A stretch of DNA of 64,000 bases, taken from assembly GCA_039096225.1 (NCBI GenBank), contig JBBPEB010000020.1, positions 186,001 through 250,000 of the forward strand, read 5' to 3'. Shown in pieces: positions 4,936 through 29,302 of this stretch. This DNA comes from Blastocystis sp. Blastoise. Its lineage: Eukaryota; Protista; Bigyra: Opalinata. Made by a program: the position numbers and the translations under genes. Position 1 is the stretch's first letter. The number at the start of each line of letters is the position of its first letter. The notes beneath the pieces are model-generated. The model searched no databases, had not been told where the DNA came from, and worked only from the letters and a program-made list of their open reading frames with translations.

Positions 4936-6234
4936 TTAAATAAGTCTAAACATTTTTAACATTTTTTTAGTAACAGATAAAACAATCTCACTTTTCTTAA
5001 TATCAGGAAGTGATGCAACACTACCAGCATAACAATCTGATTTAGATTTTTTTGTTCCAGATGCTTTAGGTAAAGCAGCAACAGCAGGTACATGCAACTT
5101 AATATAAGCTTCAATAGCTACTTTAGCTACTTCAACAATTAATTTAGTTACATAAGATATAATAGTACCAATAGTTTTCCATTTACTTGTTTTATTTTTT
5201 TCTAATTCAGCTTGAATAGCTACATGTACAAGACTTTTAGTATCTACTGGTTTATTTTCACCTTTAAGTTTATCAATTAAATCCATAGCTTCATTATCAT
5301 TAATATCTAAATCTTCAGGATCAATTGAATTTAATAAAACATTAGATACATCATTTTTTGTAACATTTGTATCTTCAAATTGAATTTTATCGATTTTTAT
5401 ATCACCTAAACGATCTTTAATATAATCAAGTTTATCAGATGTAGTTAATTCTTTAGGTTTTTCTTTTTCATCTGATTTAGAATCATCTGAATCTTTATTT
5501 TCAGAACTTTTCAGTTTATCATTAGCAGCTTTAAGTTGATTTATAAATTTTCTTTTAAGACGTTTACTATTTAAATCATGCATAGACATACGTAACCCTC
5601 GTTTAACTTGTGGAGTATCAGATGAATTCAGTAAATCTAAATCTTCTTGATAACTTGCATTTTCTTCTACTCTACTTAATGGTTTAGTAGGTTCATCTTT
5701 ATCCCACCAATTTTTATTTACCCAAGTAGATTTAACTAAATGTTTTTTACCACCACCATAATGTAAACCACTACCTTCTGAATCGTTGTTTTCCGCTGAA
5801 TTTTTGATTATTCGTTTATTATTTGGGAAAGTTCTAGCTACATTTAAAAATGGATTTGAATGATAATTAGCTTTTAATAACGACTGAAATAAACTATGAG
5901 TGGGTTCATTCTGTTCTTCATTAAGATTTACATTCACGGGAATATTTGCGGGTTGACTTGGAGTTATTCCTACTCGAAAACGTCTTTTTTTACCATAATT
6001 TTTTAGTGAATCCTGATATTTTTGTGCAACCATTTCTTTGGCATATTCTTCAGGTATATGATATTCTTTTAATTCATCAACTTGATCATGGAGAACCTGA
6101 TAATCATATTCAAGAGTTTCTCTAATATCATCATAACTCTCACCCATTCGTCTATAAATATGTTTATTCAGTAAATCATCATTAGCTAAAGCATCATTTA
6201 TTTCTTTCATTGTTTGATCCCATGATTTATATAT
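4936..6234 (-). pseudogene. 3' part of a 591-aa viral protein split by the MULE insertion
   Basis: The frame is open upstream of the annotated Met (IYK-SWDQT-MKEIND) and joins 28817-29302 in frame across the TSD. Confidence 0.85.
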
Positions 6235-6376
6235 GAGGCATTGTTAGAAATACCCAAAAAAACCATAATTATTTTAACCTGCCCAAAAAAAAATCGAATT
6301 GTTAGAAATACCCAAAATCTTTCAAAATTTTTGTTAAAATACCCAAAATTTTTACAAAATTGGTAGAAATACCCAA
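6235..6376 (+). repeat. Left TIR with repeated TAGAAATACCCAA subterminal motifs
   Basis: Four to five copies of (T)TGTTAGAAATACCCAA-like motifs. Confidence 0.85.
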
Positions 6377-7949
6377 CTGTTTATTTTAGACTCTAAACGA
6401 TTGGTGGTTTGAAAACACAAATTCTTCATAGCCAATTAAAATTCTTTTTATTTCTTTTGTCATTATTAGAAAAAAATATACTCAAGAATATATTTTTATT
6501 TTCTTTATAAAGCTTACATAAAATTTTTGTAGTAATTAAAACATAAGAAATATTTTAATAGATTATTATAATAATTTAGAAAAGTAGTTATTTAATTTAA
6601 GAGAAGCATTTTTATTTACAAATTAAATATAATTATGTCAAATTTTTAAATTAAGGATAGTATAAATACTTCAGGCACTTATATCGATTGATTAGTGTCA
6701 TTTATAGTGTAATAATATATTGTATTGCTCTCGAATAAAGCTTTTAAAAACTACAACGTAAGTTCTCATGATTTTTCATTAATTAATCACTATAAAAATG
6801 AAATTTGTTGTCCAGAATCACAAGAATATACTTTATTTTAATTTTGACATATTTAGACGATTAAAGCTTTAATTACTGCATATTTAACAACAAAGATATC
6901 TGTAAATCAATATTAAATTCATGTTAATTATTTTTATGTTATAATTTGGTAACTGATTCAGTTCAGCCACAACAAGAAGTGGAAATATGTTTTTGTTTGA
7001 TTAAGGTGAACTATCATAAGTTTAAAGATAGTGAATAAATAACAAAATTTGAGACTGTAAAAATATATGGAGTCAAAATTATGTATGTAAAAAGTTTCAA
7101 CTAGAGAATGTAGTTTTACTATAAATGTAAAAGCTAGGGTATCGAATAAAAAAACAAAAAACCCAAAAAGAAGACTTGTTTACAGATGTTTCATTTCAAA
7201 TTACCCGTTTATGTTCCATTCCCAAGGTGATGATGTTTCTGGATGGGTAGTCAAAAGATATTGTTGTCACGACTCTTCTGAACAAACTTAAATAAATAAA
7301 TTATACTCTTATAATAACATATTTATAGAAATGCAATCGTTTGTATATATTATATATCAAATGAAACAAAAAGCAAAAAATAGATTATAAGTTGTTAAAA
7401 AATGTTAAAAATAAATTAAATGATTTAAAAGATAATACTAAACAATATATAGTGCTAAAAGAAAGAATAAAAGAAAACAAATTAGACATATCATATGAAC
7501 TATTAATATTTTTAATCAAGAATATATATATATGTATTACATGATTCTACATAAATATATTAATATATTAGATTTTCTATTTTCTACACAATATTTAATA
7601 TATATAAATTTATATATATATGTATACATGTATACTATTCAATACATATGTATATCTATTCTATATACATATACAATTCTATATATATATATATATATAT
7701 AGCATTCTATACATATGCTTATTTATAATATATTATAGAATTCTAATATATCCGATTAAGTATATATATATATTCAATATATATATAATATATATTTTTC
7801 TATATATGTTATTCTTCATACTAATAAAAGTAACATATATACACAATTCTATTTATTGTTTTATATATCAATATATATATAATTCTATATATCAAATATT
7901 GTGTATAGCGTTTTAAAAAATGAGAATTCAACTTCAATTGAATGAAAAA

Positions 7950-27510: not shown

Positions 27511-28730
27511 TCATTCCTTATATATATATATATATTGATATTTTATTTAATAAACATTTTAATTATATGTTCTTTTTACACTTATGAATGCATTTATTAA
27601 ATTATTTATAGCTCTTCATCCTTCAAAACTTCATAGTTTCTGAAATGAGTTGTAATCTGTTTTATTCTCAACAGTGTATCTTATTCAAAATATGTTAGAA
27701 TTGAGTTAAATGCAGTTTTAAAACTTAGATTCATTTTTTATTTTCAAAATATACTCAAATACAGAGTATATTCAGCAATCATTAATAATTTAATGACTGT
27801 AGTTTATTATTTTAAACTGAATTCTGGTCAGTATGCTCAACATAAGCAACCAAACACAACACATACACATTCATGATTTTTAAACAACATTTTCCATTTC
27901 GACATTTACTTGATCCATTATAAAACTATCTGTCCTTTTGATATAGTATAGAGAAACTAATACCATATACCAATCAAAACTTGTTAACATGAATCTCGTC
28001 ATCTATTAAATATTTTTGTTAATCAATTCACAGTTCATACTCTTAAAACAGTTATTTGAGATTAATATTTATATATTTGTCTTTAAACAATGTAACTATG
28101 ACATTGTAATAGTATATATGAAAATATAAAGAATCAACAAATCTGTTAATTATCAAAAAATAAGTTCTATTTTCTAAAAACATCTTTATAATATTTATAA
28201 ACTCATATATTATAAATATATAGATCTTATATAAAGTATTCATTGATTAATTTAATTTGTCAGTAAATTAAAAGTATGTTATATAACGTAATTCTATGTT
28301 ATCTTTTTAATGAAGTTTATTTCATAGCTGTTTATGGCTTATTTGTCTATCAAACTTATTTTTTAAAACAATTACAGACAATTATGTTATGATCCTTGTC
28401 TATATTGTTATTCTATTGAATTAATAGTATAAATACAAGTTATATAACAAAATAAATGTATATATTGATTAAAATAAGGAATGAATATAAATAAATAAAA
28501 ATAGATAAAATTGCCAAAAAGAAAATTCTTAGAATTATATAGTACAATAAACGAACTTCTAATAGAAACTTAAAAATCGATTGATTGGATCAAATTGTCA
28601 AATCCTAACGTCATAATATGAATTATTCTTTTAATTTTTTATTAATTTAAATTCTATAAATACATCTAATAAACACGGTTATTATATAAATTAATACGAT
28701 TGGACAATGAAATCAAAATGTTAACAGATA

Positions 28731-28816
28731 TTTTTGGGTATTTCTACCAAATCATACAAAAAATTGGGTATGTATACAAATCAATAGGGAAATCTGGGTA
28801 TTTCTAACATTTTTCC
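28731..28816 (-). repeat. Right TIR of the MULE with TGGGTATTTCTA repeats
   Basis: Three inverted copies of the left-end motif. Confidence 0.85.
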
Positions 28817-29302
28817 TTTATATATTCCTAAAAATTTTTTAATATTATTTGGTAATTCTTGCTGAATATTCTGATTAATTGCACTAGCATAATTACGAAC
28901 ATTTGTATCAATTTCATAAGCTCTATTCTTAAAATACCTATCATCCATACCTCTATATTTAGCAATTTTAGCTAATGCATATCCAGTAGCAGCTCCTTCA
29001 ATAGCTGGAACACCATAAGGATAAAAATAATTATTCATAAATGGATCAACAACATCTTGTTTTACATTTTCAAAAGCTCTTCTTAAAAATCCTTTATGAT
29101 CTAATTTTTGAGAAAGATATCTTACATCTTTATTTTCATCTAGATTTCCAGGATCTGTAATAGTAGCACCTCCACGTGGTTGTGGTTTACAATATCCACT
29201 ACCTTCAAATTCATAACCTTCAGGTGGAGTAAAAGATATATTTCCACCATGTTTTGATGAATCACAATTCATATCTAAATATCTTTTAGCAATAGTAGCC
29301 AT
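28817..29302 (-). pseudogene. 5' part (162 codons) of the 591-aa viral protein split by the MULE
   Basis: The last 11 aa of ORF 28781..29302 (GKMLEIPRFPY) are read from the TIR. The true continuation is at 6225. Confidence 0.85.

Follow-up and report, generated by a model that had tools for sequence, protein, structure and literature searches.

A probable very large non-autonomous transposon within an endogenous Polinton-like virus of a tortoise-associated Blastocystis

The DNA analysed here, a window of 64,000 nucleotides (nt) in whose coordinates positions are given unless stated otherwise, belongs to contig JBBPEB010000020.1 (contig 20) of assembly GCA_039096225.1 from Blastocystis sp. 'Blastoise', a tortoise isolate. 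Its segment 6235-28816, which splits a gene that we call gene X, is probably a copy of a previously undescribed, very large family of non-autonomous cut-and-paste transposons with terminal inverted repeats (TIRs) in tortoise-associated Blastocystis. A reading of the sequence alone had spoken of a target gene that the element interrupts. This target is not an ordinary gene of the host. The flanks belong to a multi-copy endogenous Polinton-like virus of Blastocystis (the midsize eukaryotic linear double-stranded DNA, or MELD, viruses), and the split gene is a viral gene.

Ends of the element and the gene that it splits

A 9-nt direct repeat, TTTATATAT, lies directly outside both ends of the element, at 6226-6234 on the left and at 28817-28825 on the right, and is identical at all nine positions. 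The 15-nt motif TGTTAGAAATACCCA stands in inverted orientation 7 nt inward of each end, at 6242-6256 on the plus strand and 28795-28809 on the minus strand, just where the sequence-only reading had placed it; the tips read GAGGCAT on the left and, as the reverse complement, GGAAAAA on the right. With up to two mismatches allowed, the motif has five matches in the window, all of them at the two ends (shuffled sequence is expected to hold 0.24, and none of 100 shuffles reached five), and the same scan found none in the interior of the element. Its copies follow one another at intervals of about 30 nt, four in the left terminal arm (6235-6479, 245 nt, plus strand; copies at 6242, 6300, 6331 and 6361) and three in the right terminal arm (28734-28816, minus strand; copies at 28809, 28779 and 28749). 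Since the 83-nt right arm aligns best with 6297-6376, the second unit of the left arm, to which it is approximately 78% identical, the left end carries an extra outer unit of 58 nt. Over the terminal 22 nt, 17 positions match between the ends, including all 15 of the core. When pairs of random points in this AT-rich window were taken, 0.2% of trials gave a direct repeat of 9 nt equally far from both points, and 2.6% gave one at any offsets. Alternative boundaries, with repeats of 2-8 nt or with the AT run counted in the TIR, were also considered; asymmetric models match the ends more poorly, while symmetric models all share one empty site and thus leave the in-frame conclusion presented below independent of the nature of the 9-mer. 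The possibility that the element is a spliced intron was rejected, there being no in-frame GT...AG join at or near its borders and no annotated model of this kind.

The two pieces of gene X lie on the minus strand on either side of the element. The N-terminal piece (28817-29302, 162 codons) ends in ...KKFLGIYK, while the C-terminal piece (4936-6234, 432 codons) begins with IYKSWDQTMKEIND. The 9-mer supplies the codons for the tripeptide IYK in each of the pieces, and a single 9-mer joins them in one frame, giving by arithmetic 162 + 432 - 3 = 591 codons; the join was checked through coordinates and separate translations, and the two pieces were searched apart. Today the N-terminal open reading frame (ORF) reads 11 codons into the element and meets a stop at 28781, and the C-terminal piece is annotated alone as a 424-aa gene (P0001), with its own ATG 8 codons past the junction. 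In every other copy of the virus gene X comes within 35-55 nt after the packaging-ATPase-like gene, a homologue of window 4523-4870 being next in line, and the distance from the ATPase stop to this homologue is 0.23-1.15 kb in the loci L002, L003, L004, L009 and L012. The same distance in the window is 24.5 kb, or 1.88 kb after subtraction of the element and one 9-mer. Indeed the 22.6-kb segment is not present in four paralogous virus copies, nor in a free-standing metagenomic relative.

The sequences of the gene X products agree with this arrangement. The pattern M-[AS]-[ST]-I-x-[KRY]-[RN]-[YN]-L-x-x-N-C-D-[PS] at the N-terminus is common to the N-terminal piece and other virus copies (L002, L003, L009 and L012), and the first 82 or so residues of the piece match a paralogue with an E value of 7e-12. 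Gene X of L003, which encodes 341 aa, resembles the N-terminal piece at its own N-terminus (Smith-Waterman score 61; shuffles 33.8 +/- 5.4), and its last 220 aa are collinear with the last approximately 215 aa of the C-terminal piece, with a similar C-terminal tail; the latter similarity is weak (score 76; shuffles 47.6 +/- 7.7, with 1 of 500 shuffles reaching it, p about 0.002). The fused ORF has no full-length homologue; the matches extend to the N-terminal 82 or so residues and, weakly, to the C-terminal 215 or so. The length of gene X varies from 49 aa in the metagenomic relative through 231 aa in L002 to 341 aa in L003, and the gene is interrupted in L009 and L012. Gene X is a fast-evolving, hypervariable ORFan, which explains why the C-terminal piece has no database homologue. 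The gene after X is also very variable in size between virus copies; L002 lacks any equivalent of the 430-aa ORF at 2801-4093.

It could be argued that the N- and C-terminal pieces were always separate genes, that the element landed at or near their boundary and that the shared frame is coincidental. The C-terminal piece does possess its own ATG and an annotation in its own right, it has no homologue, and gene X of the closest paralogue is merely 231 aa long. Once the element is removed, however, the two frames are separated by neither a stop codon nor a spacer, whereas all other virus genes are spaced by 35-100 nt. The paralogues, furthermore, carry one gene at this position, and gene X of L003 matches the N-terminal piece at one end and the C-terminal piece at the other. 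Separate genes are therefore distinctly unlikely, and the two pieces were, with high probability, once a single gene, as the sequence-only reading had proposed from the frame that runs through the 9-mer; synteny and the weak alignment with L003 point the same way.

A more radical alternative is that there was no insertion, and that the 22.6 kb are host DNA lying between two partial virus integrations, or the product of rearrangement or mis-assembly. The interior does resemble the ordinary AT-rich, low-complexity intergenic DNA of the Blastoise genome. The two virus parts, however, run collinearly and point the same way, and they meet precisely in one frame with 9 nt in common; the inverted-repeat ends recur in a second copy, and the hAT element of 23.6 kb inserted nearby in this virus copy is equally clean, all of which makes this alternative exceedingly improbable.

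A second copy, the 9-mer and the superfamily

The second copy (copy 2) lies at the borders of the virus itself. A 210-nt terminus at L017 14379-14588 (window 70270-70479), 41.7 kb to the right of the element and just beyond the window, follows directly on the right terminus of the virus. Aligned in inverted orientation, it matches the first 248 nt of the element at 77% identity; its motif copies are in place, and its tip is GAGAC (GAGGC in the element). Among all the loci searched, the motif occurs outside the window only in this right flank. The 1.24-kb segment that follows the left arm of the element (the subterminal segment, 6480-7715, plus strand) has a counterpart of 74-76% identity in L010 7839-6614, immediately beside the left terminus of the virus. 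Arm and subterminal segment, adjacent in the element, are thus found on opposite sides of the virus in copy 2, parted exactly at their junction, and past the 9-mer the DNA flanking copy 2 differs from that flanking the element. Because this second terminus, with its arm and motifs, sits in different flanking DNA, the transposon represents a real repeated family with more than one copy at unrelated sites. The arrangement also indicates that the virus integrated into copy 2, the older of the two, and that the element (copy 1) later entered the virus. Copy 2 came first, the virus second, and copy 1 and the hAT element last. Nesting thus provides a relative time order, in which activity of the family preceded as well as followed endogenization of the virus. 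Ends, synteny and the second copy together uphold the proposal that a TIR-bounded mobile element was inserted here. A metagenome scan with a two-motif TIR pattern returned three matches, all unrelated tandem repeats of other organisms.

In the mechanism that we favour, a transposase supplied in trans would bind the 15-nt subterminal repeats and excise the element, which would insert at TTTATATAT through a 9-nt staggered cut, repair of which would yield the direct repeat. The size of the element would derive from approximately 7 kb of purine and pyrimidine arrays, from AT microsatellites and from a nested 6.66-kb CACTA-like element. Entry into the virus would have followed endogenization, because a 28-kb virus could not carry such an element.

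Several observations weigh against this interpretation. The 7-nt tips agree at just two positions, and the best alignment of the arms needs a 58-nt shift of register. Neither an autonomous partner nor a third copy was found in the approximately 175 kb of the Blastoise genome examined. The C-terminal piece of gene X found no homologue but itself in a word search of 5.8 billion proteins and a phmmer search of 1.84 billion representatives, and the case for one gene is built from frame, synteny and a weak alignment. Finally, the end of copy 2, the only other family terminus visible, also adjoins TTTATATAT, and the 9-nt repeat may be something other than a plain duplication from a staggered cut, since neither Mutator nor Merlin elements are known for a fixed 9-nt target. 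The claim of a 9-bp target site duplication (TSD) therefore stands in part: the repeat is perfect at both ends, while its recurrence at copy 2 leaves an ordinary TSD unsecured. Further copies had been predicted to carry different 9-bp TSDs, and the single further terminus examined carries the identical 9-mer.

The 9-mer has a frequency of 3.3e-4 per position in the same approximately 175 kb and, counting its complement, only four occurrences in the viral portion of the window, which amounts to 17.8 kb. That so infrequent a sequence also adjoins copy 2 appears to exclude random targeting, and TTTATATAT would be either a target for which there is a strong preference or the core of a recombination. 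In the latter case the 9-mer would be the crossover core of a site-specific integration, or part of the element; entry would occur by recombination, only at pre-existing sites, and the identical 9-mer would flank all copies. The 9-mer adjoins all three visible termini, two from copy 1 and one from copy 2, while the DNA beyond it differs, and the small number of occurrences in the virus is in line with such a core. In contrast, inverted arms with phased subterminal repeats usually denote binding sites for a DDE transposase, and no recombinase gene was seen. Moreover, given a genomic GC content of approximately 23%, a preferred target made up only of A and T could recur by coincidence at the per-cent level, and the comparison involves one extra terminus. 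A crossover core is thus unlikely. We give similarly little credence to a related possibility, that the members of this family are TIR transposons with strict sequence specificity, which enter at TTTATATAT in every case, through either a 9-nt requirement of the transposase or recombination, and move as units of more than 20 kb. If this were true, such elements, together with the equally large hATs, may account for a large share of the 'long intergenic DNA' by which the genome is doubled in tortoise Blastocystis; transposon and Polinton-like virus would insert into each other repeatedly, and the virus copies would serve as dated markers of activity.

Returning to the preferred reading, a TIR transposon that moves by cut-and-paste, the superfamily to which it belongs can be named only tentatively. 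The 9-nt repeat and the G-starting tips make Mutator the leading candidate, at somewhat less than even chances, and Merlin a more doubtful one, the remaining probability being assigned to no superfamily. The 'MULE' in the label Pack-MULE, which the sequence-only reading had applied, came solely from the 9-bp repeat and the G-starting ends, features that Merlin fits equally, and the label is unsupported. Mutator-like elements (MULEs) have TSDs of 8-11 bp and TIRs of 14-500 bp (PMC6446971), while Merlin elements have TSDs of 8-9 bp, TIRs of 24-462 bp and a conserved terminal GG (PMC8101967). The perfect 9-nt repeat lies within the first TSD range, with the caveat that the same 9-mer stands beside copy 2; the ends match perfectly in the 15-nt core and at 17 of 22 terminal nt, and the arms reach approximately 78% identity solely in the register shifted by 58 nt. 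Similar to non-autonomous MULEs and Pack-MULEs of rice and maize, the element has a 9-bp repeat, G-starting inverted ends and no transposase gene; a further resemblance is that transposase sites are expected in the arms and that the interior varies among copies with the same ends. Unlike MULEs, whose TIRs are usually long, it has a 15-nt core terminal match rather than a long near-perfect TIR, and a MULE transposase was not found where examined. With Merlin, which is related to IS1595/IS1016, it shares the 9-nt repeat and the GG of the right tip; in contrast with Merlin, the left tip is GA in both copies, and no DDE_Tnp_IS1595 protein was seen. Merlin elements are small and are not known for a strict target sequence.

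Two other superfamilies were considered for the outer element and rejected. hAT elements have 8-bp TSDs and tips of the form CAG.G (YARNG); the repeat is exactly 9 nt and no boundary model yields hAT-like tips. The ends GAGGC and GGAAA are not those of a CACTA element, and CACTA termini with a 3-bp TSD belong only to the nested element at 16578-23237. With the neighbouring hAT element (34278-57914) the outer element has in common that it is a giant TIR element with subterminal repeats, cleanly inserted in the same virus copy; it differs in its 9-nt repeat and in its tips, which in the hAT element are CAGTG and CAGCG.

Interior of the element

The element contains no ORF of substance, as the long 'ORFs' within it all lie in purine- or pyrimidine-rich arrays. 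Purine-rich, low-complexity arrays of the GAA/GAAGGA type occupy 8000-12100 and hold no real coding sequence, and pyrimidine-rich (CTT)n arrays occupy 25200-26750 as a compositional mirror of that block. These mirror blocks were considered as long TIRs and rejected; their resemblance is one of low complexity. All stop-to-stop pieces of reasonable complexity, from both the interior and copy 2, were compared with Pfam, and none gave a match. The element and the examined part of copy 2 yielded no transposase, and there are no annotated genes in 6235-16210 and 19345-28816, the portions of the element covered by the loci examined. ORF inspection and Pfam therefore bear out the earlier statement that the element holds no recognizable transposase. 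The same is true of the size of 22.6 kb, far above that of usual non-autonomous elements, and of the nested CACTA-like non-autonomous element at 16578-23237 (6660 bp), whose termini, CACTAC..., are identical at 17 of 20 positions and flanked by the 3-bp repeat ATT; among 6 x 26 candidate termini this is the sole pair with both properties. A candidate tRNA-Ile (AAT) at 27442-27512, reported by ARAGORN with a good T-arm, was set aside when the Rfam tRNA model gave no match even at E = 1, and is probably tRNA-derived debris or a false positive.

A Pack-MULE proper would be a Mutator-like element carrying captured fragments of host genes, and the sequence-only reading had indeed reported host-like spliced fragments in this one. 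The 9-nt flanking repeat, the G-starting inverted ends and the absence of a transposase are as expected of a Pack-MULE, and the subterminal segment, the only one in the element with a paralogue, might be taken for such cargo, as its paralogue overlaps exon 1 of an annotated gene. That exon, which is rich in Cys and His, is intact in copy 2 (L010 7040-7195, minus strand; exon 1 of an annotated 204-aa gene) and decayed in the element (7148-7279, plus strand), where two Cys have been lost. The segment, however, directly follows the arm in copy 2 as well. Because it occupies the same place there, it is family-internal sequence and not captured host DNA, and the 'Pack' part of the label thereby loses its sole support. 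No spliced fragments of host type were found; the interior gave no Pfam match, the covered parts hold no annotated gene, the subterminal segment is unspliced and its Cys/His exon has no homologues, so that a resemblance of the exon to the WRKY/FLYWCH-type fingers of MULE transposases was given no weight. Pack-MULEs are typically roughly 1-5 kb, and the element differs from them in its 22.6 kb, in that no captured host fragment was shown, and in having the same 9-mer at two independent copies. A Pack-MULE in the strict sense is thus very unlikely, and a non-autonomous TIR transposon composed largely of low-complexity DNA is preferred.

Three tortoise isolates of Blastocystis have genomes of 21-23% GC and 26-33 Mb with long intergenic regions, in which low-complexity DNA makes up 12% and annotated transposons only 5.6-7.5% (PMC12129017). 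The composition of the window agrees with these genomes. On the reading preferred here, tortoise Blastocystis has cut-and-paste elements of more than 20 kb that consist nearly entirely of low-complexity DNA. Standard repeat annotation probably overlooks such elements, which bears on genomes twice the size of those of human isolates. By itself the element adds a further example of transposon insertion, in a protist with mobile elements that have hardly been described; the by-products of its analysis, an endogenous virus family and the reciprocal nesting of virus and transposon, are more notable.

The endogenous virus and its hAT insertion

The packaging-ATPase-like gene (29345-30391, minus strand), which adjoins gene X upstream, was the anchor for finding paralogous copies of the virus. 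Its product matches a PHROG terminase (3e-10); Pfam and PHROG searches of the ORFs flanking the element gave only this terminase signal and a weak P-loop one. Paralogues of the ATPase-like ORF occur on contigs 2, 4, 5 and 24 of the assembly, so with contig 20 there are at least five virus copies in the Blastoise genome. Free-standing relatives were found in metagenome and sequencing-run assemblies (ERZ17877434, SRR11489747, SRR7193020, SRR7193021 and SRR23253330), where their contigs reach 23.7 kb, have 35% GC and show a compact gene order. By TBLASTN the window is collinear with L002 throughout, except for the interruptions at 6235-28816 and 34278-57914; the virus parts within the window are 1-6234, 28817-34277 and 57915-64000. 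Without its two insertions the virus measures about 28 kb. It is read as a provirus of a protist rather than a virus of animals or crops. Its own TIRs, of approximately 332 bp and 86% identity, end at L010 7845 and L017 14373 (window -4157 and 70264), and it is flanked by TAATA and TATTA (L010 7840-7856 and L017 14362-14378), which agree at 4 of 5 positions as a direct repeat and at 5 of 5 as an inverted one.

The 432-aa ORF at 31181-32479 was modelled together with its paralogues (predicted local distance difference test score 82.6, predicted template modelling score 0.84), and the best Foldseek match of the model is a MELD virus protein (E 1.6e-17, TM 0.66), followed by the Sputnik capsid protein (4e-10) and by fold matches to mavirus, iridovirus and PBCV-1 capsids. 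The predicted structure thus identifies the product as a double jelly-roll capsid protein. It is one of two capsid paralogues, the other being encoded at 32578-34206, which are 30% identical. The virus also has a D12 adenine methyltransferase, its remaining genes being ORFans, and Pfam recognized no polymerase, integrase or protease among them. Similar to endogenous Polinton-like (MELD) viruses and virophage-like elements, it is approximately 28 kb long and multi-copy, with TIRs, a double jelly-roll capsid and a packaging ATPase. It differs from known members in its preponderance of ORFans, its two capsid paralogues and the lack of polymerase, integrase and protease by Pfam. A scan of IMG/VR with the capsid alignment returned nothing, and a literature search yielded no paper tying Polinton-like elements to Blastocystis. 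The virus family is apparently undescribed, and is arguably a more interesting object than the transposon.

The identity of encoded proteins between the window and L002 swings widely along the virus, from 98-99% at 62890-63633 and 61139-61558, 92% at 57874-60237 and 82-95% at 1001-2740 to 60-77% in the capsid/ATPase block, which suggests recombination or gene conversion between virus copies. Near the left end of the virus an unannotated 164-aa ORF (L010 8313-8807, minus strand) has a higher GC content of 32-37%. Just past another virus copy, L003 17604-18884 contains a Tc1/IS630-type DDE_3 transposase gene (E 4.5e-24), and the virus copies seem to be located in transposon-rich surroundings.

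The second interruption of the virus, the hAT-like element at 34278-57914, spans 23,637 bp, with tips CAGTGCC... and, as the reverse complement, CAGCGAC..., and a perfect 8-bp TSD, TTTTAAAT, at 34270-34277 and 57915-57922. It occupies a divergent intergenic spacer that measures 73 nt without the element and 72 nt in L002. Inside it lies a hAT transposase gene, annotated as 1421 aa, with matches to DUF4371 and to a ZBED1 RNase-like domain, and the ORF at 43914-44483 matches the hAT dimerization domain (E 3.5e-4). The hAT-like element also encloses, at 50030-55920, an annotated multi-exon gene of 1001 aa with a UTP20 N-terminal domain, which is matched by the ORF at 50362-51183 (E 2e-23) and by a second piece at 50030-50314. 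Here the hAT-like element has either captured a fragment of a host gene or come to enclose a host gene.

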